A DNA stretch of 64,000 nt, from the NCBI GenBank assembly GCA_001179505.1, contig CDMY01000268.1, positions 1 through 64,000 of the forward strand, given 5' to 3'. A program made the position numbers and the translations under genes. Of this stretch, positions 8,744 through 51,854 are shown piece after piece (within the stretch, counting starts at the first letter, position 1; each line of letters begins with the position of its first letter). The notes beneath the pieces were generated by a model. The model had not been told where the DNA came from, did not search any database, and was given only the letters and a program-made list of their open reading frames with translations. Origin of the DNA: Vitrella brassicaformis CCMP3155 (Eukaryota; Protista; Chromerida).

Positions 8744-9465
8744 GGTGACGCGCGACGATTCTCCAAACACACCACAACACCTCACACAGCCCAGCCTCAA
8801 TCAACAGCTCACCTGCACACGCACAGGTCACAAGAAGGCGCATATGTGCCTCCCCTGTGTGTATCATCATTCTCACCCTCGAGAGCTGCCGCGTGCAGAG
8901 AGGACGCACACCGGGATTACTGACGACACGGGGAGGGGAAGGAACGATGCGGGAGCGACGAGATGCCACTCCCACACTTATGACGGGCCTCTCTGTCGCG
9001 TCAAAGAAGGCCTTTTTTACTCTGCTCCTATGGCGAGCTTTTTGTCGCCGAGCTCGCACAGGGATTGAACCAATGCGGATGGCGGTGTGAGGTTGGCAGG
9101 CGCACGGAGGCCAGGAGCTGCGATTGACTCATTCGTTGTCAGACTGTCACCGATTTTCTTTTTTTCTATACATGTCGCATCCCGGCCGTGCCTAGCTGTG
9201 CCAAACAAAAGGCATCATGGCCTCACGACGAGAGGCTGGCTGGCAGTACACACACGTACAAAGGGGAAGCAGGCAGATGCACATGACACAGCACACATGT
9301 CTGGCTGAATACATAGCTGGGGCACAGACATGAGACGGAGGGCCAAAGAGAGAGAGGCATCATAGAGCTGGATAAAAGCCGAATGCACCCATACATTAGC
9401 CATCAAAACATACCATGGTGAGAAACCACGAGCATCACTCAATCAAGCTGACCTCTGCCTCACTC

Positions 9466-10874: not shown

Positions 10875-11495
10875 CACGCTTCCCGGCCGGCGAGCAGTTT
10901 CACGCAATGTCCTAGGCGGCCTGGCGGCCAGTCCCATGTCTCTTGGGCACAATCAAACTGACGGCCAAGCTCGCATCTCAAGGCAGATCTCGAGGCATCC
11001 TCAGCCTTGTTTTCTTTTGGCTGAGGATGCCATCGGCCTCCCCTCCCTCTGGGGGTCATGTTGGTCCTCGTCCGGTCCCCGTCCGTACCCATTTGGCTGT
11101 GGTTGGCGTCTCCGACCTTCCCGCATGATGCTGTCTGCCGCAGCTGTCATTATATCGCTCAGCCTTATTGGCTCTTCCTCTGGCGTCCTTCTCGCCCCCC
11201 CGGCACGCTCTCCCACATCCCCCGAGCCTCAATTGGGTCTTCATCGTGAAGATCTGCTTGACGACGCCGTCTCAGCGGACCGACGTGACGAGAACTGCAC
11301 TTGCTCCCGCCTGGGACATGCGGCTTCCCCCCCGTCCCCGGTCGTCAGAGTGTGCTGAACCGCTGGTGTTGCCGTGGTGAAGCTGCAATGATGCTTGCGT
11401 GGGGATGGGAGGGCATCTGCTTCATTGCATGGTTTGCTTGTTGCACTGGCACCGTGATCATGATGTGCTCTGTGTGGTGTGGGCGGAGGCGGTCT

Positions 11496-13129: not shown

Positions 13130-16100
13130 ATGAGTCCAAGACCCCTTAAGCCTCGGCTACCCATGCTCACATTGCTGGTGGCGTCTTTGTTGACGTTTAA
13201 CTTGGCAGCTGCCCAGATGAGAGTGACGACGCCACGTGCGTTGGCCGAACAGCTCACCCGCCGCTTCCCGGACGGCATAATCATCGGCACAACTGCAACA
13301 TTCGGAGCACCACACTATGGTAGGACAGCAAAGGGGCCTCTCGCTAACAATCCATCGTGTGCTATCGACGCATCAGGGACGAAACTGGTTGGCCGTCTTA
13401 TCTACAGAGAGGACGTCAGCTCGATGCACTGCAAGCCCGGCTACTTCAACGTTACGAAAGACCTGCCGGCTCTGGATGCCTTCGATGGCAACGTCGCCAG
13501 CCTGCCCACCGCATTCCACTATCTCATCATCGTGGTGGACAGGTCGTACACACATCAGAGTCGGCAAACACTCACGAAAACCCAATTTATGCCCGTGTCT
13601 GTGTGGTGCAGAGGCGTGTGTACGTTCGTGACGAAGGTCAAGGTAGCGCAGGAAGAGTATTCGGCGACGGCAGTGGTGGTGGTGGACAGCAAAGGGTCAA
13701 GCGCAACGTGGCAGGACATTCAGTATATCATCATGGCTGATGACCTCTACGGCAGGAACGTATACATCCCCTCCATCCTCATCGACCACGAGACGGGCCA
13801 GCTGCTCAAAGACTACATCAAGCAGGCAGACATGAGTAACGAGGAAGACGAGAAGACCGTCTACGGGACGCTGGAGTGGGGCGTCTCTGAGAAGGATGTG
13901 GTTATTGTGGACTTCTGGACTTACGCTTCATCACAAGAAGGTGAATACAGCAGGTCAGATCACCCGCCCAGCTTAGATGCATGTCTCGCCGGCTGAGGGT
14001 TACAAAAGTGTCATGGTGCGGATGTCCTCTCTCTGACAACGGTCAAACCCACACGCGAAGCATGCCAGCCACCCATACGCGCAGCCAAACACACCAGACG
14101 ACCAACTGATCTCAGCCAACCGAGAGAGAGAGAGGTAGCCAGCCACACATACACTTTCGTGCCGTCCGCTCTGAGAGAGAGTCCCGTGTTCCCCTGACTG
14201 ATGTGCGGGTCAAATGCATGTGCTGTCTGCCTCAGTATGTGATCGGCGAGGGGACGGACCTTGTGGCGGATACGTAGGCACACACTGGGAGGCTAGAGAG
14301 ACAACACAGACGGACAGACAGGCAGATCACAAGCAGATATGCGTGCATGTAATCCCGATGAGACATGACCCCAAAAGCATCCCAGGACATGCATCCGGCC
14401 AGTCGGGAAGAGGGGAGAGGAGTAGGTCAGCACAGGAGCGAGTCCTGGAAGGACGAGGAGGCACATGGACTCAGAGAGAGAGCAAGATCTGGCTGAGGGA
14501 AGATGATGCAAGAAGGGCAGCTAGCTGTCGTACGAGTACTCGTGCCGCCTCGCTGCGGACTCACCGGGAGGGTGACCGGCACCGAGAGGGTGATCCGCAG
14601 GACGACGTACTCGTTCTCCACCATCACTCACATGCGCACTCCACCATCACTCTGCGGCTCCAAAGGCGGCTTGGGAAGACGCCCTGCCAAAGGGAAGTGA
14701 TCGGAACGACCGAAGACCGTGCCGAAGCAACAGATCTCAAGAGAATGACGTCAAGTCATATCGGAGGGTCAACAACGAATCATGAAACGCAACGGCACTA
14801 ACTCGCTCGGCCAACTGCTGCTATCTCCCGTCTTACGCCCCCAAGCCCACGCATGCATGCAATGCGGGCTTATCTAGCGCTTCTGCCTTCCCAGGCTGCC
14901 TCTCCCTGTGCGTATCTACGGCCTGTCGTCATGCTTGCCTACACACAACTACTATCCTTCAGCCTGCCATCCATCAGCATCAGCACCAGCGCCATCCATT
15001 CATCCATTCATCCAGGCGGCATCCTCTCCATCAGCACACGGTCCACGGCATCCAATCCATCCGTCCATCACATCCCGACACACGTCCACACACGTCCACA
15101 CACGTCCACTTCTCTGAGCCGAGCGCCTTCATCAGGGTCACAGACAGGGGCGAAGGGCATCATGAGCACTTCGCAACACGACCCCGCCGGTCAAGCGCGA
15201 GGCACACGGCTTCGGCGATGGATTCGAGCGAGAAAGAGGAGGAGGCGGCCCACAACAGCTCGCAGATGGGCAAGGCAGCGAGGAGGGAGGAAAGGAAGGC
15301 AAAACCGTCGCCAATAGCAAGGCGTCATCGACAGCAGCACCAGGTAGAGAGGTAGCAGGTCCCTCGGGACTTCCAGTCGTCAGGCCAAGGGAGAAGGGCA
15401 CGACGCCATCGCGCAGAGAGGTGAGGGAGAAGGACCTCATTAAAACCGATATCGACAAGGCAAGTAGGCCATAACAGACAAGGCAGCAAGATCAGGATAG
15501 GCGTCCGAGTCGTCTGCAGCCGGTTGGGGTGTTGTGTGTCATTGGTCAGTCAGCGGACACCAGGGATGGGCAGGGAGAGCAGTCCTTCCGAGAGAAGACG
15601 AAAGATCGGCACGTCCAAGAGCCTTCAGTTGACCCATGGCACTTGTGAGTCCAGAGTGAGCCGCTCAGCACGGACAGGGGGCTTCACCATCAGGATCAGA
15701 GGTACGCACAGTGAGGAAGAAGGAAGGAAAGCCCTCTGCACCGACTTGAGCAAGGTCCTTGACTGGCATTCTTTCAGATGATATCCAGCTGCGTTATTGG
15801 TGACGACTGCAAGGCGGCAGGGGACATCGAGGACGACAGTAATGGCCTCCAGTCGGCCGACATGGGCAAAGTAGGCAAGTGACAGCAGCAGGGCAGCCAG
15901 CGGGGCGTGTGACGGCACACCAGACCGGTTCAGCAATGGTCAGCTGGGAGCCAGAGTGAGGAAGAACGACTGCAGATAGGGCATCAGGTGGACCAAGAAG
16001 ACGAGGGAAAGTCAAAACGGCTGGGCAGTGGTCAGCAGGGGGCCCGAGTGAGGAAGAACGACTTCACATAGGGCATCAGGTGGACCGAGAAGACGAGGGG

Positions 16101-20736: not shown

Positions 20737-23700
20737 ATGGAAGAGCACCAGGAAGAGCAGGAGGCTCCTCTCCTACCGGGTCAGCAGACAAGGAAAGATG
20801 CCTTTCGTCGTGTCCATCGTGCGGCGTTTGCAGGTGCTGAGGCAGCCCATCTTCTGACACTGCAGGAGCATGCTACGGTCGTCGCTCAGTCGCTGCACGC
20901 AGATGGGCAAATCGATGGACATGATCCGCCACAGGTGAGCATGCCAAATGAAGGAATGAATGCCTCAAGATGATCTGATCATCCTTCTGTTGCCCTTCTG
21001 TTGCTTCTGCGTCAGCCATCGGTCCATCATTTTTCACTTCAGCCAGCCGACGAATGGCCCTTTAGCCATCCACCGGCTCTCCCTCTATCTCCCCCATTTC
21101 TCCCCCCTGCCGAGCATCCCCACCTCTCATCGAACATGACGCCCCGTTCTTACGCCCTGGTCCCATTCTTCTCGTCGGACGAGCAGCAGCCGAGCGGTGC
21201 GAGTGAAGCACTGTGTGACTTTGACCATGTGACTGACGGCACTGCCCAGATGGTGACCACACAGACAAGCAGCGATGCTACTGCACAGAGGGATGCTACA
21301 AATAGACTGCCTCACCGATTGTCTGTGCTCTCTTCTTTTTGGTGCAGCAAGCAGCAGCGGACCAGCAGGGTGCACCTGCACAAGAGGCTCCTCCATCTGG
21401 TCAGCAGACAAGAATGCACGCACCCAGACATGCTGTTTCATCGCGTCCATCGTGCTGTCGTTTGCAGGTGGTCAGCCTCTGGCCTACAGCTGGAGCGAGG
21501 ACAATTCAGTGCAGCGAGCCGCTCCAGCCATCAGCGACTCGCTGCACCCAGATGGGCGCACCGATGGGCTTGGTCTACCACAGGTAAGCAGAGAAGATAA
21601 CGCGTGCATCCATTGATTTCATCCCTTTGTCGCGTGCCTGTCTGTTTCGTTCAGCCATCGGGCCATCATTTATCACCACCAGTGGAGGCTCACCCATCAG
21701 CAGTCCAATGGCCCTTCGGTCATCCCGCCGCTCTTCCCCCTTTCATCCCACACAACCACCTCGAACCATTCCCTCCTGCCGGCTACCAAGATCCCTCACT
21801 TCCCATGCCCCTCCCAGCTCACTCCTCTGACTCTCACTTCCAGCTCCCTCTCATTGACCCACTCATGGCTGGCGCACCTGGCGGTCTACCGCTCTCCACA
21901 GAGGGATCGCTGAGGCAGCGAGCGTCATCCCTCCCACCCCCACGGACACACAAGGCGGCGCCTGAAGTGACGCTCGCCGAGAGAGAGGCGCTGCTGGCCG
22001 ACTTCGAGAGGCGCAAGGAGCAGGGAGAGGAGCTGACCATGAGGGCATTTGCAGTCGAGAAGGGAATCACTCTCAGCCAGTTCAAGCACTGGTACTATCG
22101 GTCAAAAGGGGGGGCACATCATGAGGCGGCGGACAAGACAAAGAAGCGCACCAGGAAGTCGCCCTATCAGCCGATCGAAGACGAGATACGCCAATGGCTG
22201 GTTGGCCATGATGATCCGACTAGCATCTCCGTGGAGCACATGCGCCGCACGGCACTGGAGATTGCGCAGCGGCTGGGCATCAGTGGCTTCAAGGCGAGCG
22301 ATAGGTGGATCAGTGATGTGAAGAAAAGATACAAGCAGGTGGGACAGAGGGCACACAAGCGGGGGACGAGTGGACGATGGATTGCACGTCTGTCGCCTTT
22401 GCCTGTCGTCCAGACTGTTGCTTCCACCGATCAGACTTCCCCCGCTGCTGCTGCTGATGCTGCTGCCGCAAGTGCCGTCCCACCTCCCTCGATCTACACC
22501 AACGGCATGACGGGCGACCAAGACTGCGACGCGTTCCCGCAAGAAGGAACGCACAGACTGCGCGGAGCTGACGCATCGAAGTACACGCAAGGGGCATTGA
22601 ACCAGACCGATCAGGTGACAAGCAATCGACACATCACGCCCATCTTCTTATGTTCTAGCCACATCTTTTGTGCTGTTGGCAGAGCCGCGAAGGAGGGCAA
22701 TTTGTGTCGGCTGCCGCCGCGGCGTCTTCTCATCCCCCTCATTCCCTTCCCTCTACACTTACCCACCGGCCGGAGCTGCACATGCCAGCTGCAGCAGCTG
22801 CCGCGGCTCTCCCTGCACCTACCTACTCATCGGCAGGTGGACACATGGATGCTGCAGCGGCCGCGGCAGCGGCTCTCGCTTTCCAGATGCATCCACCCCA
22901 CACACCTTCCCTACCTATTCCCGTCCCTCACCAGTCACCACAGAGGGAGCTTTCCGACGTGAAGGGACTGAGCAGACCGGTTCGCAACACGCGCCCGTAT
23001 GGTGCTTCAGCGACATGTGTTTCTCTTCTCGCAGAGCACTGAGTCTGTTGCAGCCCCGCCATCAAGCCGCGAGGGACTGAGCGATCAGCAGGTACGACAT
23101 CAGACGATGCACCCAGCCCGTGAATGTATGTCGTGCGCTGTGTTGCAGGGCCAAGTGGCTGACGAGTCAGCTGCGGTGCGAATGGCGGATGGCTTCATCG
23201 GCCGTCGTCATAACGATTGGGTGACTCATCGGCGGTTGAGCGTGCAGAACCCACCGGCTGCTGACGGCGATCGAAGGCTGCACCAGCAATCGCAGTACTC
23301 GAGACAAGAGGCTCATGTGCCTGCCGCAGCTGCTGTCGCCAGTACCCATCCCCATTTTCCAGTGCAGCCGCCCCACTCCCATCCCTTACCCAGGCCCCTC
23401 ACCCACCCGTTGGAAGCAGCTCCGGCTGCCGCTGCTGCAAGTCGGGAGGCGGATGGGTTCATCGGACCGACGACCGACCTCAGCCGACAGGTAACACACT
23501 AATCCTGACACCACGGCGACAACTGAGGCCTTTTGTCTGCCTGTCTGTCTGTCTGTCTTGACTTGGCTGGCTTCAGACCACCACCTGCCCACCAGACGAC
23601 GATGCTGCTGTCAGCGATCGGCCGCTCGACGAGCAATCGCAGCATTCGGGGCAAAAAACCATGAGCGTAAGCCAACCAACAGGGCTCACTAATCTGTTCA

Positions 23701-25603
23701 ACAAAGCAGCATATTTCGGCTGTCTGTGTTGTCGTTCAGATTTTTCAGTCTGGGAGTCGACTGACCAACGAGAGGCCGCCAAACAAGATCCAAAAGGCTC
23801 CCACACGCAGCCACCGAGAGGGCCCGCCGTCTGTGGTGAGTGAAACGCCATGAAATAAACATCCACACAGACGGGGAGGCATCGTGCTGTTGTGTGTGCA
23901 GGTGCTGTCCCGTTCATCGGCCAAGTCTGTGTTGACAATGACTGCCGACGATCGCCTCAGTGACATACCAGAGGTCAGACACACACAAGGAGGCCAATTG
24001 AGAGCATTAGGACGCGTCTGGCTCTCTATGCTGTGCGATTAGGATGACGATGGTGACGCGATTAACGTGTCTGACGATGCGAGTAGTTATGTCACGGCCC
24101 TCTCAAGTCGCAGCACGACTGACGGGGACGACCGATCGCCCGACCGCCAGGTGAGAATGCCCATGGGGTGATTGCAGCATCACCACGATTGTCCTCACCT
24201 CCCTCTCTGTGTGTGCAGGTGGTCACTGGCAGCAGTCTGACTTCGACTGAGTGTGCGGCCCTCCGCCCCGTTTTGGCGCTCGGCATGTTGGACGAATGTG
24301 AATTGACTCTGCTGTACAGGTGCGACGCACAAACCACATCACAGACACTGCAGTCAATCATGTGCCCTTCGCTGTTGTCTCTGATGTTCTCAGGGCGTCG
24401 CGTGACGGCGCAGAGTATGGCGATTTGCTGCGCTGTGTGGGCGACGCGCAGCAGCTGGTGTTCGTCATCCGCAAGGACAAGTACGTCTTCGGCGCCTTCA
24501 TCAGTGCCAACATCCTAGTGCCCGATCACCCAAGAGGCATGAACCGCTACCTTTGTGATGGGTGGGATTTCTCGCTGGCCGGCCACTTCCCCAGACCGAC
24601 CAAGGTCGGGGAAGGCCTGGCCGGGCAGATGTGGGGGGACCGGCTGCCAGTGGGTGGGGCGAAGCTGTGGATCGGTGCGATCGGTGGGTGGCTGGAGTTG
24701 GGCTGTGAGGGTGGCGTTGCTGCTGATATGCGCAGCTGCCGTCATATCATCAGCAGCCATCGTGTGCTTGAGGGCTATGTGGGGGTGAGGGATGAGTATG
24801 GCCGTGCTCTGTTTGGGGGCAGTGAGGAGTTTATGGCCGATGAAGTGGAGGTCATTCGTGTCGACGGTCGGTCACTGCTCTCACTCAAGGTCACACACAC
24901 GTCAGCGAGAGAGAGCCGCATCGACGCCCTGTTGATTTGATTGCAGGTGATCGAGGGTGCGAATTTTGATCCGCTCCACTCTGCCGCACTCTATCGGTTC
25001 CTCGGACTGACAACTGGAAACACACTGAAGCTCATCTACAGGTGTCATAAATCGTCCATCGTTTGACTCTCTCTCTCTCGTCTTCCTTCTCTTTTCAGGG
25101 CTTCCCGTGACGGGCCATTATACGCCGATCTGCTGCGGTGTGTTGGCGATGCGAATAGCCTGGTGTTCGTTGTCAGCAAGGACAAGTACGTCTTCGGCGT
25201 CTTCATCAGTGAGGTCATCCGGCTGCCCGACTACAACGACTACGGCTGCGATGTGTGGCACTTCTCGCTGGCCGGCCACTTCCACAAGCCCACCAAGATA
25301 GAGGAGGGGAAAGGTAGAGTGTGGGTGGCAGGGCGGGGGGGGACACTTTTTCGGGCGAAGCTGGTGATCAGTGGGAATGGGTGGCTGGAGTTGGGCTCTG
25401 AGGATGGCTCTGCTGCTGACATGCGCAGCTGCCGTCAGTGGATCCACAGCTGGGATGTGCCTCAGGGCTATGTGGGGGTGAGGGATGAGGGTGGCCGTGC
25501 TCTGTTTGGGGGCAGCAGGGAGTTGTCATGGCTGATGAAGTGGAAGTGCTCACTGTGGTTTGAGAGGGAGAGAGAGGTCAGATTGACTGAGGACTGCATA
25601 TGA
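20737..25603 (+). CDS. CENP-B/pogo-type double HTH + low-complexity linker + two TLDc domains (copy 1, long N-terminus; frameshift in last ~12 codons)
   Basis: EREALLADFERRKEQGEELTMRAFAVEKGITLSQFKHW..RKSPYQPIEDEIRQW..RRTALEIAQRLGISGFKASDRWISDVKKRY at ~21980-22338. Phase-consistent exons lead to TLDc exons at 24393-24888 and 25098-25603. Confidence 0.75.
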
Positions 25604-26096
25604 TTACTCAATATGGTACGTTTTGATGGCTGTATGTGTGAAGGTAAACTGCTTTTATCCAGTGTGCTGCGAGACTTTTCACTTTGGCCCTCCGTGCTTG
25701 TGCTTTGCTTGTGTGATTGGTCTGGTGCGATGTGGTCTGTCCGCATAGAATACACAGCTGACAGACAGATAGAGTGTGAGACGTCCATCAGATGACAGCC
25801 AAATGGCGTTTTGTGTACGTATGTGTGCGTGTGTGTGTGTGTGCGCGTCCGTGTATGTGTAGTCATCCGATGTGACATCGGGGACGTTTAAGGACACGCA
25901 AGTCTCATCGAAAGCATCCATAGAATGAATGAATGGCTGGCTGCATCCAAAAATACTCGTTGTGGCGCTGTGCGGACGAAGTCACCACTGAATGACGACA
26001 TGGATGGATAAAGAGCACCACCTCACCCACACCAACACACACTCATCCGCCATGCATACACGCAAGAAAGTGAAGTTAAGTCCGCCCAGCAAAGCA

Positions 26097-29000
26097 TCAT
26101 GTGACATCAAAGAAAACCTCATTGCTATCTTCGGCTTTGTGCGGTTGTTGCCTATCGTCCTCACTGCCGCATGTGTCGTCACTGGGCGGTGCTGCCGCGG
26201 GCTCACTAGTGCCATCAGGCCGGCCGGAAGTCTCCCGCTCGAAGATCGTCGGCAGCACCGTCACGCGGCTGCCACTGCGGACCGCTGCACACACACAGGG
26301 AGAGAGAGAGGGATGACACCAGCCATGTGTATTTGTGTGTGTAGAGGGAGGGAGTACTCACTTCGGGAGCTTCTGGATGTCTTGGTCTGGTAGGTAAACA
26401 GCGACATAGCCCGACGGCGGCCGGGCATCCTGTCGGCCCGAGCACGGAACCGCGCCTCATACCACAAAGAGCCCTCCACCTCCCCCGATGAGCTCTCCCT
26501 CCCTCCATCGAGCAAGGGGCCACGTCGACCGAACAGCGGCACCAGCGGCACAGAGAGATCGCTGGCCGACAGCTGCAGCGGCCTTTGGTGGCGCACGGGT
26601 GATGACGATAGAGGTACAGTCGGCTGCATCATAGTCGACACTGGCCGGTCTCTCTCTCGGCCGTTGTCGGGGAGGCCGAGGGGCCCATGGGGCGAATGGT
26701 CATCGGTTTTGACACCAGCAGGCGGCATCAGAAAGGAGTCCCCCACCGAGCTCTTGTCCTCTCCACTCGTGTGCTGCTGCTGCTGCTGGATGAGGGCCGG
26801 GGCCGCCGGGCCAGCCACTGTCGCAGCACCAGCCACAGCGACGGCAGGCTCGGAAGCGGCCTTCTCGGTCAGCGATGCCGTGTCGTCGTCACCGAGCCCA
26901 CCAATCTCTGATGCAGTGGCTGTTGCACTGGCAGCAAGGCCGTGTGGTGGGTGCTGTGGCGGTGGTGCTGCCGATGGGACGTCTTCACAGAGATAAGGAT
27001 CTGCACCGTCACCAGCCGCAGCACCAGCAGCAGCAGGGGAGGGAGAGGGGGACGGCGTCATGGTGACCGTGACATCGACATTGACTCTTGGTGGCTGTTG
27101 TGGGGCTGCTGGTGGCTGTGGTGGTGGTGGTGCTGATTCTGCTGTCGTTGTGTTGCCGCTGTCGTTGTCGGTGTGCTGCTGTGATGACTGTGCTGGCGGC
27201 TGCGACGGGGCGATGAGGCTCTTGAAGGAGAGGAATGGGGGCTTGGTCGAATGCAGCTCGCTGAAGCCCAACACTGACATACCGACACGACACACACAAC
27301 AAACACGACACACACAACACATGCACTCGTGCGCCCCGTGTGTGTGCCCAGCCGCATACCGGCCACGCCGGGGTCCTCGTCATCGCCCGCAATAACGACC
27401 CTTCCCATCAGCTCGCAGCCATCACGCTGACGGAACAACCTACACACACAAAGACAGAGATATAGATCGGTGGATCGGATGGACTCCCTCACTCACCTGA
27501 TCGCTCGTGAGATGGGACTTTGCGCGCCGGTCGCCTTCAGCAGATCACGCACATCTGCACACATCCACAGACAGACAGACAGACAGACAGCACAGCCATC
27601 TCTCTCTCTCTCTCTATGTATGTGTGTGTGCGAATGTCAGACCGTCATGGTGAATCGCGGCGTGCATGGGCATCCCCTCAATGATGATGGGGTTCCACAG
27701 CCTCAGCGGCGTCGACACGCTGATCCACTGGCCCTCAACCAGATCCACCACCGCTGTCGCATCAAAATGCGCATCTGAATGGACACACAAACAAATGGAT
27801 TGTACTTCCCTCTCTCGCTATCCCTGTGTGTGGTGGGCGGGGGAGGATGTGGATGGCTGGACTGACCGACGAGTGTCTGCAGGCGGATTCTAACACGATC
27901 GGACTCCTCGACCTTTAGACGGTCCTCTGACACATCCTGAACACACACACGCATTGAGGTATGTTCGGGCTCTTTGGTGGGTGGCTGACCTTGATGTATC
28001 CCCGTACGACTCTGCTCTTGGCCGAGGTCTTCATGGCGCCCACCTGGAACCAACGGACCTCGCTGCACTCATGAAGGACAACACGCACACATGGATGGAT
28101 GTGTATGCAGCAGCCGTTCTGTCCATCGGCTAATGCTGACTGACCCGTCCGGCCTCTCGTAAAGCACCTGACACAGACACACAGAGAGATGGATGGAATG
28201 AAGATGTGCGCGCGTGTGTGCCTGTTTACTTACCAGTCTTTCGAAATGGTCGAGCTTCCCTGCACACGAATGGATGGACAACACACACGCGACACACACA
28301 CAAAGACGAAACACGGCATACGACCGCCATGTGTGTGCCTGCCAGTGGTTCAATCACCCACTCACCGTCAGCACACTGCAGTATCTGGTCCTCCAACTCT
28401 TTCCGCAGACTCTCAGGACGCACCTGAACACACACCGACCCAAACACCCACACATACAGGTGCATCCACCCTCTCTCCCTCGCTCTCTGCGGGCGTACGT
28501 GGCGCGTCCAGAACTGGTCAAGCGGGGCATTCCTGTCCATCTGTGTCTGTGTCGGTGCTGGCTGCTGTGCCGCTGTTGATGGATGGAGAGGCAGAGGGAG
28601 GGGGATTGTCTGCTGTGGATATGTCTGGGTATCAGAGGTGCCCGGGCTGCTGCTCGAGGCGGCCTCGTCCCAAGTCTTGAAGAGGAGGTCTGAGTGGCGG
28701 TCGCTGTCACTATCATGCACACACAGACACAGAGAGAGAAGAGATGGCCATACGCTCATTGTTGTGTGTGTCGTTGTGGGTGCACCTGCTGTCGCGGTCT
28801 TCATGGGTCATGAAGTACCTTCACACACATCACCACACACAGACAAACAGACGTCCCTCTCTCCCTCTGTGTCTTAGGGTACCGACCAGTAGTAGTGTTG
28901 CAGCTGTCTGTCGGCCTCCTCGTTGCTCTTTTCGGCTTCACGCAGAGTCGCCAGCCTACACACACACACACACACGCACACAGAGGGAGAGAGAAAGGCA

Positions 29001-31087
29001 TGCAGACACATGGATGGATGGATCGAACCCCCCAGACACACGTGACTAACCTCCGCTGCACTGTGTCCAAGTCTGCCCTCAGCCTCTCCAGGTCATCCGC
29101 ACCTTCACCACCGCCACCACCTTCATTCTCAACGCCGCTGCTGCTGCTGAAATAGTTGAACGACTCATTCAGCTCCCTCAGCAGCTCAGTGTTGCCAATG
29201 GGCAGGTCGTCATCCGTCGAGTCGGACCGTTTGTCGCGCAGCGCCACGGCAACACTCTTTGAGAGAGAGGGGGGCGGGAGGGGAGGGAGAGGCGGGAGGA
29301 GGTGCATCTCTCGGCTGCCTAACTGCTCCAATGCTGCACAGACACGCACAAAGAGAGATAGGGAGAGAGAGTGGCTGTGTGTCTGATTGACTTACGGACC
29401 TTCCCTGTGGATCATCGGGACGAAGGAAGCGGCACTCGGACTTGGACTGAGGCTCAGGCTGAGCGAGGCCTGTGAGGCCTGTGAAGGCTGTGCCCTCACA
29501 CCCACACCCACACCGCCACCCCCTGACACGCCTGAGACGCCTGATGTGCCGGTCCCCTCGTTGCTGCTGCTCCTGGTGTCGTCCACAACGTCCTGAAACA
29601 GCTCCTCGTCATCTCCGCCACCCCCACCTTCACCACCATTTGGCACTGGGGCCTCCAATACACCACTAGCAGCAGCAGCAGCAGCAAAGGGCGCCTCCTA
29701 CACGCACACACACACACAGAGAGAGGGGAGGGGGGGGGAATGAGCCTCCACACACCATGTGTGCCATCCACTTATCCATCATCACCTCTTGCTGCTGCTG
29801 TTGCTGCTGCTGCTTCTGCTGCTGTGGTTGGGGAGGCTGTCTCTCCCTCTCCCTGTCCCTCACTTTGTCTTCAGCGCCCGACGAGACCTTCCTCCCAGTG
29901 AGTGTCTCCACCACCTTTGTCTGGTAGGCTGACGAGACCGACATGCGTGTGTCCCACTCCCACGCCGAGATGCCCACCTGCACGCATATGGGGAAACGGA
30001 TGGATAGCGGGCCGCTCGCTGCACGGTTCTCTCCCTCTCTCTCCCTCTCTCTCTCTCTGTGTGTGTGTGTGTTTGCGTGAGGGTAAGGCTGACCATCTCG
30101 GCAAAGCGCTCGAGCAGCGTTCGTATCCTGTGCACCTGGATCACTGACACACGCACACACACGGAGAGGGAAATGGCAAGGACGGTGCATATGTGCGCAT
30201 GGGTGGCTGCACTTGCCTCGTCTCGAGTGGTCGTGTATGGTCAGTTTCCTGCGGAAATCGGCGAAAAGGGCGCGCTTCTCGGTCTCGCGCAGCAGCCTCT
30301 CCCTCTCCTACACACACGCAGCAGCATCGTTGAGAGGATACACACTCACACACGTGTGTGTGGTGTTGTTTGCTTAGTGTCCTACTCGCAGGCGTGAGAG
30401 CAGCATGAGCTCAGCTTCCAGCTGCCGGACGTCCCACTCCTACACACACACATCCACCAGACACAGAGATAGAGAGACGGCAGGCCCCCTTCCCCTGTCT
30501 CTCTCTCTCTCTCTGTGCTCGCGCACTGACCGAGACTTGCAGCGCGAAAAGGAAAGCCGCGTTTGTGCTCTTGACGAAGGAATCACCTGAACCACAGCAC
30601 ACCCACAGACAGAGAGAGAGGGGGCAGGAGCTCACACGCACTTTCCATCTCTCTCTCTCTCTCTGTGTGTGTGTGTATGCCGCCCGACCGAATGTGTAGA
30701 GCACTTGCTCGAGGAACGGGGAGCCGGTGTCGAGCAGCGCAAGAGTGAAGGGCACGCCGTACGCCATATTCAGGATCACATTGAACCTACGCACACAGAC
30801 ACACACAGAGAGAGATATGGGAGACCAGCTCCACTGTGTTGGTTTAATTACCACAGCAGGCAGTCCTTGACAGTGTCCAGAGAAGGGTCTCTGCAGGAGT
30901 GCAGCAAACAAAGCCCATCCCTCCGTGTGTGTGTGTGTTTTGTGTGCGTACTTTCCCCGCCATTTGTCGTAGTGTGGGAAGGCGAGGCACTGCAGCGACG
31001 ATATCGCCCAGCCAATCTGACGACACACAAACACACCCACGCAGCAAATAGAGGAAGACACAGAGAGAGAGGGTGCATTTGAGCCGG

Positions 31088-31126
<39 letters not shown>

Positions 31127-31576
31127 TGTTTGTTTGTTTTCTGACCCAGGTGATCCACCAATATATCCACCTCACGTAGAACGAGTCGCAAATGCTAACT
31201 CACACACACGCAGAGGGGGATGCATGTGCGTCCGTGTGTGTGCGTGTGCGGCTGTGATGTTACCCACCAGGCCCAGAAGGCCACAAGGCAATAAAAAGAG
31301 GTGATCATCGCTGGCAGCTGAGCACGCACACACAGAGGAGAGAGAGATTCACAAAAACAGTTCTGAGAGCAGTGCAACAATACCAAAGCAGTGCTCCTGG
31401 GAGTGTTGTAGAGCATCCTGCCTTCGATGTAGATCTGACACCAACCCGCCCACACACACATGCACGCACAGCCATCCATCCACACATCCATGTGGTGTGC
31501 ACGTACCAGTGCGGGCACAGCGATCACCCACTCCATTATCCTCTGCACACAAACACACAAAGAGTCACCCACGCAC

Positions 31577-31613
<37 letters not shown>

Positions 31614-32504
31614 TGTGTGATGGGGCGAGGGGGAAGGCTACGTACCATTGCTGGGATCGGTCTTGGGTGTGGGTTGAGGGACATCACAAACACAGGAGTG
31701 GCCTCCAGCCTTTGTATGGGTGGCAACGCAACACACACAACACAGACGAACACGTCAGAGAAAGGCCGGCCGTGTGTCCGTGTGTGAGAGATAGTCATTC
31801 TGCTTACCACATGGCTATATAGGTGACTGTCAGCACAAACAGGATAAACAGCATCACACCTGCTCACACATCCATCGAAAAACACACACACATATCCACC
31901 CCTGCCTCTCTCTGTGTGTGCGTGTGTGGGAGCAGATCACACATACCGGCGCTCTTAAGCTTCCAGTGCATCCTCGACACCCACAGCGGCGACCGGAACA
32001 GGCCCTCCTCATCCCGATCCCTGTCAGAGGTGCCCTCGCTGCCACCGCCTCCACCTCCCTCCTGCTGCTGGTGCAGCTGCTGCAGCCGCGCCTTGAGAGT
32101 CGAGGCCCTCTCGTGTCTGTGCAGCTGGTAGAAGGCTATCACCACGAGGCCCAGCTCTATGAACAGGAGGTTGAACACACCTGAAGCGACATACACACAC
32201 AGAGAGGGAGAGGCAGGAAGACGCCGTGAGTGCATTGCTTCTCTTTGCTATGCTGCTCACGCACCCCACGAGCCGACAGCAAAGATCTCGGTGAGCTCCT
32301 TGTCCTGCGCTTTGAACCGCGGATACTCATCCTGGTCGTAGAAAAAGAGATGAGCCGTCTGCACACACACACAGGCACAGAAAGAGAGAGAGAGAGAGTG
32401 AATCAAATCAATGAATGAATCAATGACTCATTCTCATCATTGCGTACGAGGAACAGGAAGAAAAGCGAGTACAGCAGGATCAGATCCAGGTCATTGCGGA
32501 GCAT
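26097..32504 (-). CDS. Microbial (type-1) rhodopsin-like 8-TM domain fused to coiled coil and PAS/PAC domains (>25 exons)
   Basis: Helix C RIMEWVIAVPAL (31507-31542), helix F VILNMAYGVPF, helix G LYTFGDSFVKSTNAAFLF (D 30582-84, K 30570-72), then ERERLLRETEKR, VGISAWEWDT, VRPESL..YERPDGEVRWFQV..RGYIKDVSE, a second PAS-like segment, and stop ..FFDVT* at 26097. A possible upstream start exists at 32575. Confidence 0.8.
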
Positions 32505-32648
32505 CGCTGCACCAATCATCTCACCACCATCACTCCACAAGGCTCACTGCGCCATTCTTGCGAGCTTGGGCACATCTCGCCAGCGAAGCTCAAGAAGGCT
32601 TCTGATTCTCTCTCTTCTTCCCGTGGTTATTGCTTGCTTGGCTTGGCG

Positions 32649-33882
32649 ATGGGCGCTCATCCACTACGGAGATCTGTTGTCTTTGTCTTCCTGCTGCTGC
32701 TGCACGCAATCACAATCACATGGGCGTTCCTGCCGTCCTCTTCGGTGCTCAGACACAGACACAGGAGGCCATTGATGCAGCAACGACGGCAGCTTCCGGC
32801 AGCGACGATGATGATGATTGACCTATCAGCGGCAGCATCGGCGGCGTCGGCTGCGGCGGAGCATCTGCCGTCGTTTCTGCAGGCCATCACCGTCACTGAC
32901 GAAGAGCAATTCCAAATACGGGTGAGCGTGTGAGTGAGAAGACACACACGTGCCTGGTGTGCATCTCCGTGTGTGTGTGTTGGGGTCATGCAGGCGATCG
33001 GCATCGCCTTCTCTGCCGTGACGGTCGGCGGCGGCACGGCCGCCTACTTCCTCAGACCCAAGAACACAGAGTGAGTCGCCAAGCGCCACACACACACAGA
33101 CGGGAGGGAGATGCCGTGTTGCGATGTGTGCTGTCAGGATGAAGTTCGTTCTGTCCGACAGCGAGGCCGCGGCCGTGTCGCTCGTCAACGGCATCTATGA
33201 CGCGTCGGAGGAGGACAAACGCATGACCGAACGGGTGCACACACAATGGATGGATGGATGGATGGATCGGCACGTACCTCTGGCTGGCTGGCTGGCTGGC
33301 TGTGTGTGTGTGTGTGTGTGCGCAGGGCTCGATAGGCCGGACGAGGCGTCAGTTGGAGGCCGACAGGATCGCCGAGGAATTCGCAGAGGGAAAGGACCCG
33401 AGGGAAGTCCGCGGCAAAACGGTATACATACATATCCCACCCACACACACACAGACAGACACACACACCTCTTGTTTCCTTCACTCTCCCCATTTCTATG
33501 TGGTATGGTGTGCAGATCACCTACAGCGAGGTTGACCTGAACTTCTTGGCTGTGCTTCTCAGGGCAGCCGAGCCGAAACAAGGTACAGCATCCACTGCCC
33601 CCCCCACCCCCCCACCTGCATCTGTCCGTGTGCAGGTGAGACCTTTGTCGACCTGGGAAGCGGCCTTGGGAGAGCCGTCCTGGTGAGGATGCATGGCACT
33701 CTCATCCACCCACCCACCCATCCATATATGTGTGTGTGTCTTGCATGTCTAAACAGGGTGCGGCAGCCCTCTATCCCTCGTTTCGCAAGTGCACGGGCAT
33801 CGAGTACCTGCAAGGCAGGACCGACCTTGCTAAGGCAAGCCACGACAAGCACCATTACCACAGATCGACTTCTCTCCTTCCA

Positions 33883-33918
<36 letters not shown>

Positions 33919-34354
33919 TGTGTGTGCAGACGTATGTGAGCCGATTTAGGTCATCTCCAGCTATCGAGCTCATGACCGACGATTTCGCGCTTCCAACGTC
34001 GGCGAAGACCGACCAGGCCATCCAGCAGGCCGACGTGCTGTTTGCGTACTCGCCCCGCTTCTCCGGCAAAGAGCTGCTATCGACTGTGGAAAAGGCCAAG
34101 AGTGGTGCGCGGATTCTCACTGTGGACAGGTACATAGGCAAATGGGTGCAGACACGCGCGCACACACATACAGAAGGAGACAGGCGCGAAGCCACATGTG
34201 ATGATGCCTCTGTGTGTGTCGTTGTGCGTGGGTTTGTGTGTCGTTGTGTGCCTGCAGGAAGCTTGCTTCCGACGGTTTTGAGCTGATCAAGACCTTGGAG
34301 GATCCCTCGGGCGACCTCAACAGATACAGAGGGTACGTCTTCCGGCGACTCTAG
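32649..34354 (+). CDS. Class I SAM-dependent methyltransferase, DOT1-like, with bipartite (signal + transit) leader and one TM segment; putative plastid protein
   Basis: Leader MGAHPLRRSVVFVFLLLLHAITITWAF-LPSSSVLRHRHRR; TM AIGIAFSAVTVGGGTAAYFL; motifs TYSEVD, FVDLGSGLGRAVL, CTGIEYL, DDF, ADVLFAYS; ends GYVFRRL*. GC-AG intron at 33835. Confidence 0.8.
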
Positions 34355-34662
34355 GGGACACAGAGAGATGGCCGGCTGCAACCGGGTGCGTGTCGATAAC
34401 TGGATGGCCAGACAGACAAGAGGGCTCATGTGGGTGGGGGGGCGGGCGGGCGGGTGTATTGTTCGTGTGCGACAATGGAGCGAATCAACGAAGCTCGTTG
34501 GTCAAGTGGATATGCACGATACGCAATATCCTAGGCAAGGCCCCTGTCGCCGTGAGTAGGAGTCGCAGTAGAGGTAATATGACTGGCAGGTCCACGCCAT
34601 CAAAGCTTGTCACGTTGAGGAAGCACATGCATGTCTCAATCAATCTGACCTCTGCCTCACGC

Positions 34663-37589
34663 TCACACCACAAAGACATCTACTTCATCGGCCATGAAAT
34701 CCCTGCTGCCCCCAAACAGAGCGTTGCCCTTACGTCTCACCCCAACATAGCCCTCAGGCACATCTTTCCTGTGGATGGACTGACGGCAGCGGCGCATGTC
34801 AGTACGAGCGCCACCCTCACAGCCCAACCACAGCCACCAGCCGACCCTCACCTTCGCCCCGCCCACTGTCCCCTCCCGCCCGGCCACACGCACTGGCAGC
34901 CAGCCCTCCCCCATTTTGGTAGGTCCCTTGGCGAAGTGGCCGGCGAGCGAGAAATACCAGACATCACACCAGTAGTACTTCTTCTTGTAGCCTGTTGGGT
35001 CGTCGGGCACTTGGATGTTGGCACTGATGAAGGCGCCGAAGACGTACTTGTCCTTGCGGATGAGGAACACCAGGTTCTTCGTGTCGCCCACACACCGCAG
35101 CAGATCGCCATACGACGGCCCATCATGCGAGGCCCTGAAAATAGGAGAAAGACGGGAGAGAGAGAGAGTCAAACGATGGACGATGTAGGACACCTGTAGA
35201 TGAGCTTCAGGCTGTTTTCACTTGTCGCTCCGAGGAACCGATAGAGTGCCGCCGACTGGAGCGGAGCGAAAGCTGCACCCTCGACCACCTGCAATCAAAT
35301 CAACAGAACACTGATGAGGCTCTCCCTCGCTGATGTGTGAGTGACCTTAAGTGAGAGCAGTGACCGGCCATCAAGACGAATGACTTCCACCTCGTCGGCC
35401 GTGAAGTACTCACCGCCCCCAAACACAGCCCGGCCACGCTTACTCCTCAGCCCCACATAGCCCTCAGGCACATCAAGGCTCCAGATGGAATGACCGCAGC
35501 TGCGCATATCATCAGCAGCGCCACACCCCAACCACAGGCACCCACCGAACCCACCGATCCCCAGCTTCGCCCCATCCACTGTCCCCCCCCGCCCCGCCAC
35601 CCACACGCACTGCCTGCATTCCCACAACTTGGTCGGTCCCTTGGCGAAGTGGCCGGCCAGCGAGAAATGCCACATATCACACTCGTACCCGTCGACGCCC
35701 GTTGGCTTAGCGGGCGGCTGGATGCCGGCGCTGATGTAGACGCCGAAGACATAGATGTCCTTCCGGATGATGAACAACAGGCCGGTATTGTCGCCGACAC
35801 AATGGAGGAGATCGGCATACGACGACCCATCACGTGAGGCCCTGAGAATACGACAAACACATGCTTGATCGATTGCACGGGCTTTCTGTGATGTGTGTCG
35901 TACCTGTACAGCAGAGTAAATCCCAACTCGTCAAACACGGATGGGACAAGCCAGGAGTGGAGGCCCGCACACTCAGCCTCACTCAAACTGCTGCCAACGA
36001 TCATCTGCACGTAAACGCAGACGCTAGTCTTGAAGATTGCATGCATTCTTGTTTCTTATCTGGACGCAATCATGCCATGTGCAGACTCTCACTTGCGGGT
36101 CATGCAGTTTGTCATCCTCGTCTGTTGTGCTGCGAATTGAAACGGCCATGACATGACCAACCGCACCATCAGACACACTTATCATATCATCACCATCCTG
36201 ATGGCACAGCACAGATGTGCAATAAGTGATGTGCTGCCGTCTTTGTCTGTGTCTGTCTGACCTCTGCTATGTCACTCAGGCTATCGTCGGCAGTCATTGT
36301 GAACACAGACTTGGCCGATGAACGGGACCACACCTGCACACACAAACTCACAATGCCTGACCGTCTGTGTGGGTGTCCATTTCACTGCCTTTTGCTGACC
36401 ACAGACGGCGGGCCCTCTCGGTGGCTGCGTGTGGGGGTCCTTTGGATTTTGTTTGGCGGCCTCTCGTTGGTCAGTCGACTCTCTGACGGCGCCATCTGAA
36501 CGACAACACATACAGCTCAAATAAGTTGCTGCTGCTGCTTTCGCCAACGTGTGAATGAGTCCTCTTGGTTTGGTTACGCTCATGGTGTTTTGCCCCGAGT
36601 GCTGCGACTGCTGGTCGAGCGGCCGATTGCGGGCAGCAGCAGCATCGTCGTCTAGTGGGCAGGTGGGGGTCTGCAGCCAGACAAGTCAAGACACGAAGGT
36701 GTTACTTGCTGCTGTGGTGTCAGCCCGCTGAGTGTCTTACCTGTCGGCTGAGGTCGGTCATCGGTCCGATGAAGCCATCTGCCACCTGGATGTCAGCAGC
36801 AGCAGCAGCAGCATCAGCTGAAGCTGCTTCCGACTGGTGAGTGAGGGGCCTGGGTAAGGGATGGGGATGCGGCGGACGCATTGGGAAAGGGGGATCGACA
36901 GCAGCAGCAGCTGCTGCAGCGGCAGGTGGCTCAGAGGACGGCAAAGGAATCTGAAAAAGGAGGCATAGACTGATGAAAAGTGGATCTCTCACTGCATTTG
37001 TTATCTTTGCCTGACCTGTTGGCATCGCTTCCTGAAGGTTTTGATCCACTTGTCGCTCGCCGAGAAGCCAGTGACGCCCAGCCGAATGGCGATCTCCATC
37101 GCCTTGGCTCTGATGGCCTTGGGGGGGACGCTCGTGGGGTCGTCATGGGTAGCCATCCACTGCCGCATGTCGTCCTCGATCTGCTGGTACTTGGGCGGCC
37201 TGTTGCGCTTCTTGTCTGAGTCGACGATTTGCTTGCCCTCCTCCCTCTGTTTTTTGGTGGCATAACACCACTGCCTGAAGCGCTTGGGTGGAATGCCTTT
37301 CTCCTTGGCGAACTGGGACATGTTGATGGACTCGCCGGATTGCTGTCGTCGAATGAACTCGTCCACCAGCTGCAGCCGCTCGCCGATTGCCACCTCGCCC
37401 GCCCTCTCTGTCGACATCTGGACAACCGTGAACAGCAGACATGTGAAGACATGTGAGTGAGCGCAGTTTCACCTGTTGTGAGGATCCTCCTGTCGTTCCT
37501 TTTGTTGATGTGGGCCGTGGTGGGAGCGACTCCGAGCGATCGTAATGGGAAGCAGCCGATGCACCCCCGCTTACCACCGGCTGACCCAT
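34663..37589 (-). CDS. CENP-B/pogo-type HTH-TLDc-TLDc (copy 2, apparently intact)
   Basis: ERLQLVDEFIRRQQSGESINMSQFAKEKGIP..RNRPPKYQQIEDDMRQW..IRAKAMEIAIRLGVTGFSASDKWIKTFRKR, phase-consistent exons, and two LLYR|ASxDG TLDc exons ending FMADEVDVFVV*. Confidence 0.85.
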
Positions 37590-39288
37590 AACCACCAGGC
37601 CATGATTCAAAAAGGGCCACTCAGCGTCATCTAATCGACAATCGGATCCTCGTCTGTGCGGTTCTCAGTGTGTCGTGTCGGTCCACTCACTGTGATGCGA
37701 GTCTGTCGTCAATCCACCACCGAGATCATTCGATTCCCATTCTGTCTGTGGCTGCACTGCGCACACAGACACACAGACACACAGCCAGGGAGGGTCAACA
37801 GACGTCAAACAGATGGCCGTGCAGCGACTGTGTTTGCGCACCTGATGATGAGCGTTTTCGTGATTCACCGTGACTGCAGCGGCGGCAGCCACCTGTGGGG
37901 AAAGGCCACCACGTGACATTGCTTGCCGGGTGTGCTCACCCCACTGACGCACGTACCTGTGTTTGACTGTAATGACGCTCATGATGCTCCTCGGCCGATG
38001 CGGTGGCCCACATCCAATCACCCTCAAGATCACCCTGCACACACATGAGAAGCAGACGAAAAATGAGCCAAAGCAGTGACGTGTTGCGGCACAGCACATT
38101 ACCTGTGCGTCAGATCTGCCCAAATCACTCATCAGAATGCCCTCTTTTCGCCGGACGATGAGTTTTTTCACTCTCTCTTTCAGATCGCTGCAGCTCGCAA
38201 AAAGCGGAAGGAAGGGGGGGAAGAGGGGTGCTGGACGATCTGGTGTGGCTGTTGTGTTGTCTGTAGGTCACCTCCTCCGAGCGACAGTGGAGATCTGGCT
38301 GTGGTGATCTGGCTGCTTCTCCTGGCAATCTTGTGACGTCACGTTTTGAGACCACCACCCGGAGGGCACACACGATGGGTCAAACACGTGGTGCCTTCGT
38401 CTTTCTCAGTTTCGTCGGCAGATGAGCGTACACGATCGTGCCGAATTAGAGGACTCATCGATACTCTCGCCTCCGCTACCCATGGGTCCGGGCTCGCTCG
38501 TCGAGCCCGGACATCCCGTCGCTGCTGATCCTGCCTGTCCTGCCTGTCCTGATCTGAGCCTGCCTGTACCGAGTCAAATGGGAGAGAGCCATCCGCCCTC
38601 ACGAGCCCGACAGCGCGACGTGCGCGCGGGGGAGACCGGTGGGCGGGTGTGTCACGAAGGACACGGGTGGGTGCGCGAAAAAGCGTCGCCCGTCGAACAG
38701 CGTCCGCGACGTGACTGTCGCGAGTCGCGACCGAAAACCGGCCAAGAAACATCGAGCTCGCAAGCGCGCCCGTGTGTCTGTGAGCGCGTCGCTGCGGCTG
38801 CGAGTACGTACGCCACCGCACGCAGGCGTGCTCAGGCTGCCATACTCTCGCCTCCGCTACCCATGGGTCCGGGCTCGCTCGTCGAGCCCGGACATCCCGT
38901 CGCTGCTGATCCTGCCTGTCCTGCCTGTCCTGATCTGAGCCTGCCTGTACCGAGTCAAATGGGAGAGAGCCATCCGGCCTCACGAGCCCGACAGCGCGAC
39001 GTGCGCGCTCCCAAATGCCAACAGTAAACCGGTACAGGGCAGGCGAAGGCTGCATCACGGTGACGAAGCGAGGGAGGAGAGCTGAGTCACCGTATGCCTC
39101 AGAATCATCCTCTGTCCGTCTGTCTGTCTGTCTGTCTGTCTTTCCGTCTATGTCTTCGATGTCTCGTGCTGCCGGCGCTTTGCTTGGCGCTTTATCGTTA
39201 CTGGTTCACCGGACCCGATCAGGCCGCCCCAGAGACATCACGTGATGGCCATGGCACGGGCGCCTGCGTGTGAACGGAGTAGTTTCTT

Positions 39289-51132: not shown

Positions 51133-51854
51133 GTAAGAACGCAACTGCCAGACTCTCCAGCGTCTGTCCTTTTCCGTTTGCAGGACCAAGTATCATGTGT
51201 GCCAACGCCGCTGCTGTATGTCGTGACGTGACGTGTCGTGACGTGACGTGTTCCATGGCTGTGCGATTCTGTCTCGCCGCTGCGCTTGCGCAGACTTGCT
51301 GGTGTATCGGCACTTGCGGGTGTGGCATGCTTGCGCATGAGCGTTAAGCAGTTCGTATGATTTCAATCGTGTTGTCTCTGCTTGTCGGGACGGTGGGATA
51401 CATGGAGGGTACACAGAAGTACGTGCACACTCAGCCGATTTTTATGCCTTCTGTTTGTCTGATTTCATAAAGATCACACTCTTTGCGCTGCATCCAGAAA
51501 CACAACGTTTGTGTTAGTTTGATATTCTCAACGTGGCTGTGGCATCATATTAAAAATCAAAGTACGAAATCACGATGCAATTAATGTGTCCAAATCGTCA
51601 GCAGCAAAGTCCCTGCTGCCTCGTTCAATGAATCTGACCCCTCCCGCCCACTATCCTTCTGTCTGTCTGTCTGTCTGTCTATCACACAGCATCTGCCTGT
51701 CTGCTGTGTATGCGGACAGACCACATCGCACCAATCCAGCGAACACAACGAACACAGAGGGCCGAGAACAGAGAGGCCTCACAAATCTGAATAAAAGCAA
51801 TACGCATACAGCACAGCCATCAGAGACTTCCTCAAGTGATCTCGGGCCTCACAC

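Follow-up and report, generated by a model that had tools for sequence, protein, structure and literature searches.

How could an eight-helix rhodopsin signal if the chain that carries it held neither an enzyme nor an ion channel? This question is raised by a locus of the chromerid Vitrella brassicaformis CCMP3155, at which positions 32519 to 26097 on the minus strand of the window (the whole 64,000-nucleotide stretch analysed here, contig CDMY01000268.1 of assembly GCA_001179505.1) can be read as one gene of 32 exons, with 3861 nucleotides (nt) of coding sequence and 1286 amino acids (aa). We propose, with a probability of somewhat under 60%, that this one Vitrella gene encodes a candidate membrane photoreceptor, in which an eight-helix rhodopsin of the bestrhodopsin/enzymerhodopsin type (approximately aa 1-320) would signal via a PAS region and a C-terminal tail. 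Retinal binding, a single transcript and the signalling route are the parts of this proposal that we infer.

Relationship of the membrane module to bestrhodopsins

Hydropathy of the gene model places transmembrane (TM) segments at aa 13-31 (TM0), 57-75 (helix A), 134-152 (B), 169-192 (C), 201-219 (D), 222-245 (E), 266-288 (F) and 295-320 (G). TM0 is an extra N-terminal helix before helix A, assigned by hydropathy only. Helix C contains R173, E176, W177 and P182, with Ala180 and Ile187 at the positions of residues 89 and 96 of bacteriorhodopsin; helix F contains Y278-G279, and helix G contains D303 and K307. The spacing between E176 and K307 is 131 residues, as is the spacing between D85 and K216 of bacteriorhodopsin. 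Loops rich in Arg/Lys, the A-B loop among them, lie on the side predicted by a type-1 topology in which the C-terminus is cytoplasmic. A preliminary description of this DNA had quoted eight hydrophobic segments, and all eight sit on the minus strand within 26097-32504, five of them contiguous and three split by introns exactly as they had been spliced there. The residues that it named (the equivalents of R82, E85, W86, P91, D212 and K216, Ala at 89, Ile at 96 and YG in helix F) were likewise all found in the spliced model.

Searches of Pfam and the PDB were carried out with spliced pieces of at most 79 aa (70-79 aa), taken one by one rather than as the whole spliced domain. With the piece covering helices B-C-D (aa 134-210), Bac_rhodopsin (PF01036), the family to which the preliminary description had pointed, was the sole match among 24,736 families (E 0.011, 15.6 bits, profile positions 39-90), though under its cut-off. 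The same piece matched four PDB sequences, all of them rhodopsins: 7pl9_A (E 1.2e-8), in both of its tandem rhodopsin domains (residues 160-223 and 560-621), then the Rh-PDE entries 7cj3/7d7q (E 0.16-0.22) and cruxrhodopsin-3. The piece covering helices F-G and the start of the linker (aa 257-326) had no Pfam match and also recovered 7pl9_A (E 3.2e-5, residues 287-350 and 689-753). Identity to 7PL9 is approximately 35% over helices B-C and 31% over helices F-G, and the two matches are collinear, lying 127 residues apart in 7PL9 and 129 here. K307 and D303 align with the Lys and Asp of the DVVMK motif of 7PL9, and exon 14 opens with EWDV, which aligns with the QWEI/EWNV that follows helix G in 7PL9; this alignment spans the exon 13/14 junction. 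The 7PL9 protein is a bestrhodopsin, for which the conserved K332 of PaR1 (the R1 Lys) is the retinal site (PMC10962995).

Judged by these similarities, the membrane module is a genuine relative of the eight-helix rhodopsins of the bestrhodopsin/enzymerhodopsin type. The earlier prediction was of a type-1 rhodopsin in which an additional hydrophobic helix precedes helix A, Glu occupies the D85 position and the Schiff-base Lys is aligned; the Pfam and PDB matches of the spliced pieces agree with this, TM0 being added by hydropathy. The suggestion of a possibly undescribed rhodopsin class did not hold, as the module is clearly related to the bestrhodopsin modules of 7PL9, with RxMEW, YGVxF, LEQ and DxxxK in common; YG in place of YP in helix F is indeed present, but it is a bestrhodopsin trait and not an oddity. 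A MASE1-like or other non-rhodopsin 8-TM sensor was considered and rejected, because the spliced pieces match rhodopsins specifically (PF01036, 7PL9).

Read-through genomic stretches (exons plus in-frame intron) had no Pfam or PDB match, and a phmmer search with the helix E-G read-through yielded low-complexity matches only among 1.84 billion representatives. Word-based searches with the E-G stretch and an exon-3 stretch found nothing, a search of the ESM Atlas with the F-G read-through returned only meaningless globin matches, and a scan of JGI metagenomes for relatives of helices F-G gave 600 pattern matches, none of which was confirmed. No rhodopsin was found in two 50-kb chunks of the Thermus plasmid NC_017588.

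Bestrhodopsins are rhodopsin-bestrophin fusions, as far as PMC10962995 conveys the work that it cites (Rozenberg et al. 2022). With the Vitrella protein they share TY (helix B), PVF (B-C loop), RxMEW (helix C), YGVxF (helix F), LEQ...DxxxK and, where helix G ends, EW(D/E/N)(V/I); both also have an extra helix before helix A (from hydropathy here) and a helix G that runs into a connecting helix. However, the Vitrella protein has a single rhodopsin module and no bestrophin channel domain, and the C-terminal partner of this module is a PAS-like region with a disordered tail. In addition, it has Ala rather than the Asp of 7PL9 at position 89, with Pro91 kept, and Asn at the Trp182-equivalent. With the enzymerhodopsins (Rh-PDE 7CJ3/7D7Q, Rh-GC and histidine-kinase rhodopsins) it has in common the arrangement of eight TM helices, a Glu in place of D85 and a helical (coiled-coil) linker that follows helix G, but no catalytic domain was detected, and the likeness to Rh-PDE is much weaker than that to bestrhodopsin. 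On its recognizable domains, the Vitrella protein is neither a bestrhodopsin (no bestrophin domain) nor an enzymerhodopsin (no catalytic domain). Bacterial MASE1-PAS-GGDEF sensors have the same gross layout of polytopic N-terminal sensor, helical linker and PAS, whereas the Vitrella protein matches rhodopsins and lacks GGDEF, EAL and kinase domains.

The idea of an alveolate type-1 rhodopsin with PAS and no enzyme is shared with the dinoflagellate 'Alt-rhodopsin' CAE7343182.1 (532 aa), which has an AlphaFold2-predicted C-terminal PAS fold where no Pfam domain is found and was proposed to be sensory and not an ion transporter (Bulzu et al. 2022, PMC9601134). Beyond that paper, no other rhodopsin-PAS report was found in the literature searched. 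As far as the two can be compared by description, Alt-rhodopsin has TxxxK in helix 7 and is placed next to heliorhodopsins in the tree, whereas the Vitrella protein has 1286 aa and DxxxK and is bestrhodopsin-like. What appears to be new is a bestrhodopsin-type module with a PAS-like, non-enzymatic and non-channel output; the combination of a rhodopsin with a PAS fold has itself already been reported.

Gene model, transcript support and cytoplasmic region

The model was built by hand from GT-AG and GC-AG sites that hold one open frame, the splice sites being chosen to keep that frame. Its introns measure 53-129 nt and have (CA)n/(GA)n runs inside; 30 of them are GT-AG, and the sole GC-AG intron is intron 15 (30144-30216). 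The donor of this intron, AG/GCAAGT (the slash marks the splice), fits the consensus of the GC-AG class. A GT donor was rejected here, since the only one available leads to a stop within exon 17. Translation can begin at the in-frame ATG at 32519; the ATG at 32504 with which the preliminary description began the gene is a valid Met, but the second one.

The gene model of the 3' half is solid. Five 3' introns agree exactly with the contigs of one RNA run: these join 27273 to 27360, 27554 to 27643, 27774 to 27867 and 27935 to 27989, as at the junctions of the model; one contig stops at the exon 22 donor, as modelled, and contig sequence continues past 26600 toward exon 32. In addition, an orthologue was detected on a 5-kb ENA metagenome contig, k147_2882043 (ERZ893784), which covers window positions 29979-26173 and ends before the rhodopsin exons. 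It comes from an uncultured close relative (dS, the synonymous divergence, is approximately 0.35 in the PAS exons) and has a TLD-like sequence beside it, just as in the window. The orthologue keeps the splice sites of exons 18-32 without exception; its exons either lack gaps or differ by indels whose length is a multiple of three, and its introns are indel-rich. The features of the gene are as follows, in the order of transcription.

26097..32519 (-): whole coding span, 32 exons, 1286 aa; stop codon 26097-26099; alternative start ATG 32504
32448..32519 (-): exon 1, aa 1-24, start codon and first part of TM0; in-frame codon log-odds +12.2
32265..32358 (-): exon 2, aa 25-56, end of TM0 and TM0-A loop; log-odds +21.2
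31947..32180 (-): exon 3, aa 56-134, helix A and a 58-residue basic/acidic, Gly-rich A-B loop; log-odds +38.9
31808..31859 (-): exon 4, aa 134-151, helix B (TVTYIAMW), aligning with helix B of 7PL9 R1 and R2 and of Rh-PDE; inside the PF01036 match
31646..31709 (-): exon 5, aa 151-172, B-C loop with the PVF motif common to bestrhodopsin, from the 7PL9 alignment
31507..31542 (-): exon 6, aa 173-184, start of helix C, RIMEWVIAVPAL, aligning with RYMEW of 7PL9 and RYAEW of Rh-PDE
31540-31542 and 31531-31533 (-): codons of R173 and of E176 (counter-ion position) in exon 6
31384..31434 (-): exon 7, aa 185-201, end of helix C and C-D loop, from the model and the 7PL9 alignment
31268..31317 (-): exon 8, aa 202-218, helix D; only frame-keeping donor/acceptor pair
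31146..31194 (-): exon 9, aa 218-234, first half of helix E, from the gene model
30952..31016 (-): exon 10, aa 235-256, second half of helix E and E-F loop, from the gene model
30852..30890 (-): exon 11, aa 256-269, E-F loop and start of helix F, aligned to 7PL9
30689..30786 (-): exon 12, aa 269-302, helix F (NMAYGVPF), F-G loop and start of helix G, aligning with WWVLYGVLF...LEQ of 7PL9 R1 and R2
30768-30770 (-): codon of N275 (Trp182 position) in exon 12
30531..30586 (-): exon 13, aa 302-320, helix G, with D303 at 30582-30584 and K307 at 30570-30572; DSFVK aligns with DVVMK of 7PL9
30094..30439 (-): exons 14-16 (30386-30439, 30217-30307, 30094-30143), aa 321-385, amphipathic helical linker, from the gene model
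29786..29977 (-): exon 17, aa 386-449, WEWD motif, then a Gln-rich stretch; 85% identity to the orthologue
28499..29697 (-): exons 18-22 (29400-29697, 29051-29333, 28887-28955, 28786-28818, 28499-28709), aa 450-747, low-complexity region with an acidic/coiled-coil core in exons 19-20
27867..28513 (-): PAS_3-like stretch (PF08447 match), aa 743-813+, end of exon 22 and exons 23-27; exons 91-100% identical to the orthologue
28366-28423, 28234-28259, 28145-28167, 27990-28062 and 27867-27936 (-): exons 23-27
27360..27774 (-): exons 28-30 (27643-27774, 27497-27554, 27360-27439), aa 831-921, conserved globular stretch with RNA-confirmed introns; 88-92% identical to the orthologue
26362..27273 (-): exon 31, aa 921-1225, Pro/Ser/Ala-rich tail, probably disordered; intron 27274-27359 RNA-confirmed
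26097..26284 (-): exon 32, aa 1225-1286 and stop; its splice and the C-terminus (...EVFFDVT) are common to the paralogue fragments

For the 5' part, the coding signal was assessed by codon-usage log-odds trained on exons 17-32 versus introns. Exons 1-13 scored +112.7 bits in the frame of the model, compared with -128 and -41 in the other two frames, and had a GC content at third codon positions (GC3) of 0.76; every intron was negative, and exons 15 and 16 were ambiguous. Exons 13 and 17 lie only 554 nt apart, and the space between them is taken up by three exons that continue the frame and encode an amphipathic helix; a 3' untranslated region, an intergenic gap and a promoter would not fit there. 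It is very probable, we infer, that exons 1-32 form one transcript. Exact look-ups of the open reading frames (ORFs) of the window in public annotation found none on record, and no public gene model was recovered for the locus.

Behind helix G, the amphipathic helical linker (aa 321-385) is followed by the WEWD motif and then by approximately 330 Gln/Gly/Ser-rich residues, whose acidic/coiled-coil core in exons 19-20 is gap-free and 90-94% identical to the orthologue in nucleotides, with 113 of 127 aa identical. The sole Pfam match of aa 743-813 is PAS_3 (PF08447; E 0.0039, 17.9 bits, profile positions 26-81 of 89), and its best alignments in the PDB, though short of significance, are with the PAS domain of a LOV histidine kinase. 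Over exons 23-30, 167 of 173 aa are identical to the orthologue (dS 0.35), and the ratio of nonsynonymous to synonymous divergence (dN/dS) is 0.044, which implies strong purifying selection. From this pattern of conservation, the PAS-like region (exons 23-30) is clearly functional. The coiled coil with PAS/PAC described earlier is retained as a helical linker and at least one PAS_3-like stretch, the latter below the Pfam cut-off, and a second PAS domain found no statistical support. We also considered a split PAS, with the WEWD motif as the missing N-terminal third of PAS_3, and rejected it because an artificial join of the two did not lengthen the match; a bridge from the PAS region to bacterial PAS proteins was rejected as well, its top matches being cystathionine beta-synthases, which are chance matches.

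Pfam detected no kinase, cyclase, phosphodiesterase (PDE), bestrophin channel or other output domain, whether in read-through sequence spanning exons 17-32 or in the spliced pieces; the earlier statement that H-box, cyclase and PDE motifs are missing stands, no such family being found in any downstream piece. Beyond aa 320 there is no hydrophobic domain except an Ala-rich low-complexity stretch in the tail (aa 1064-1082). The last 360 residues are Pro/Ser/Ala-rich and match no Pfam family. Within them, GRRRAMSLF (aa 1205-1213, 26396-26422) is the same in the orthologue (P0004) and in one paralogue (P0005) and reads GRRRAMSLL in another (P0006); this motif looks like an RRxS basophilic-kinase site.

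The gene is closely flanked on both sides. A convergent plus-strand TLDc gene lies directly downstream of the stop codon (approximately 23363-25560), and plus-strand coding potential is present head-to-head just upstream of the ATG at approximately 32.65-34.4 kb (stop-free stretches, codon signal up to 56 bits), where no Pfam family matched positions 32650-34400. The latter makes further 5' exons unlikely, and the convergent and divergent neighbours together leave no room for extra exons with a catalytic domain.

When the tail was compared with known proteins, the best matches were two 'unnamed protein products' (P0005 and P0006; 369 aa and 300 aa), annotated by NCBI as separate proteins on contig CDMY01000268.1 of Vitrella brassicaformis CCMP3155. 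They are approximately 82% identical partial copies of the last exons only, duplicated at least two times along with the TLDc gene (window 25714-27655), and may be expressed fragments or pseudogenes. Diverged TLDc gene segments (70-78% identity) occur in the window at 9400-10900, 23363-25816, 34605-38200, 51684-55000 and 58900-63800. These segments match the TLD genes around the paralogue fragments on CDMY01000268.1, a pattern that describes a large, repeatedly duplicated TLDc cluster. A 452-aa ORF at 21604-22962 (+) has a Tc5/pogo transposase DNA-binding domain (PF03221, E 8e-6), and a TLD gene on the contig of the paralogues has a weak HTH_Tnp_Tc5 match; a transposase piece may be fused into TLDc genes. 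In addition, a 288-aa ORF at 13130-13996 (+) has a PA (protease-associated) domain (PF02225, E 5e-6).

Alternative explanations

Several observations weigh against a single light-sensing chain. Coverage by RNA contigs is confined to 28590-26097, the gene's 3' third, and these contigs fully account for the sequence words that the run shares with the locus, so that exons 1-21 have no transcript support in this run, and exons 1-16 are supported by neither RNA nor the orthologue, which leaves internal evidence only. Because the contigs confirm 3' introns only, the join between rhodopsin and PAS follows from the open frame. The 3' end has separately annotated partial copies and can in principle stand alone. 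On the side of homology, the PF01036 match of 15.6 bits, obtained on a short piece, compares with a gathering cut-off of 24.6 bits, and the PAS_3 match of 17.9 bits with one of 25.6 bits, the N-terminal third of the latter profile being unmatched. TM0-A had no PDB match, and helices D-E-F had neither a Pfam match nor a significant PDB match. The second candidate PAS (aa ~836-912), which is PAS-like by pattern only, matched nothing in Pfam or the PDB, and the WEWD motif of exon 17 was not recognised as PAS by Pfam. A hidden Markov model (HMM) built from 85 prokaryotic rhodopsin sequences, collected by a motif scan of genome contigs, scored the domain at -0.7 bits, which is noise level, though the alignment was collinear; this score was no better than that of 356 of 982 local shuffles and 43 of 72 unrelated multi-TM ORFs (hhalign P 0.002), and the HMM was dropped as evidence. 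Finally, the Trp182 position, which is Trp in 7PL9, is occupied by Asn275.

Some of these points would be expected if the locus held two genes and no fusion, one for an 8-TM rhodopsin on its own (exons 1-13/14) and the other for a cytoplasmic PAS protein that starts at about exon 17, with the open frame between them an artefact of splice choice. The RNA contigs are limited to the 3' part, exons 15 and 16 have ambiguous log-odds, intron 15 requires a GC donor, and it is the 3' end alone that was duplicated and annotated as separate genes. Nevertheless, we regard two genes as improbable: the 554 nt between exons 13 and 17 are taken up by the three in-frame exons, the similarity to 7PL9 runs on over the exon 13/14 junction, and the GC donor is of the consensus type, its only GT replacement running into the stop. 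A decaying or silent 5' part, in which the rhodopsin exons would be a relic and the PAS region and tail alone expressed, is more improbable still. It would account for rhodopsin exons that have no RNA contig at all and for a helix E-G stretch with no protein match among the 1.84 billion representatives or in a word search of 5.8 billion proteins (which covered proteins of 144-458 aa only), not even from a public annotation of this gene. However, 13 short exons keep one stop-free frame, intact splice sites, a strong in-frame codon bias (the GC3 of 0.76) and all key rhodopsin residues, and low expression together with the 3' bias of a poly-A library would explain the absent contigs equally well.

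The most probable of the alternatives is a module of rhodopsin fold that is light-blind or regulatory, with a remodelled pocket that forms little or no pigment. It would serve either as a scaffold or as a silent companion to a second 8-TM rhodopsin of the same cell, to whose complex it would bring the PAS region and tail. Trp182 packs against retinal in almost all type-1 rhodopsins, and its replacement by Asn275, at a site where 7PL9 retains Trp, could impair or even prevent the formation of a pigment. No rhodopsin match was obtained for helices D and E, the two that border the pocket at its ionone-ring end, and heterodimeric rhodopsin pairs (NeoR/RGC) are known in fungi. On the other hand, the Schiff-base Lys, both counter-ion carboxylates and the equivalents of Arg82, Trp86 and Tyr185 are retained, and such residues are usually the ones lost first in retinal-free opsin relatives. 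We consider a light-blind module unlikely, and the weight that we still leave it is due to Asn275 at the Trp182-equivalent. For the pigment-forming sensor that we prefer, the pocket also bears on colour: a three-carboxylate arrangement is linked to far-red absorption, and with Ala at position 89 this arrangement is absent, so that the candidate sensor would absorb in the ordinary visible range.

Proposed signalling and its meaning

In the photoreceptor that we propose, K307 of helix G would bind retinal, and Glu176 and Asp303 would form its pair of counter-ions. Helix G would continue into the cytoplasmic linker (aa 321-385), and the remainder of the protein would be cytoplasmic: the low-complexity part with its coiled-coil core, a strongly conserved stretch (aa ~740-920) with at least one PAS_3-like fold, and then a 360-residue, probably disordered tail with its basic RRxS-type motif. 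Isomerisation of retinal by light would move helices F and G, and the helical linker would transmit this movement, in the manner of Rh-PDE, Rh-GC and bestrhodopsin. The PAS region and tail may then change their oligomeric state or their binding of partners, making protein-protein interaction the output, and not catalysis or ion flux; this output could be modulated at the conserved basic motif GRRRAMSLF. The full chain of events, in which a pigment-forming 8-TM rhodopsin of the bestrhodopsin type uses neither channel nor enzyme and signals by light-changed association or partner binding of a fused PAS region and tail, is put forward more tentatively, and we hold it to be clearly less probable than even.

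The eight-helix rhodopsins of eukaryotes are known to drive enzymes (cyclases, phosphodiesterases and kinases) or a fused bestrophin channel. If the Vitrella protein forms a pigment and is one chain, the same module would be wired to a PAS-type interaction domain, giving a natural single-chain, light-switched protein-interaction module and a third type of output for this rhodopsin clade. Such a protein would help to explain how 'pore-less' relatives of bestrhodopsins in chromerids and dinoflagellates relay their signal, and it would offer a compact natural scaffold for light-controlled protein association. In addition, the exons of the sensor part are small (23-98 nt as stated, with exon 3 at 31947..32180) and no annotation was recovered for the locus, suggesting that censuses of alveolate photoreceptors may undercount genes of this kind.

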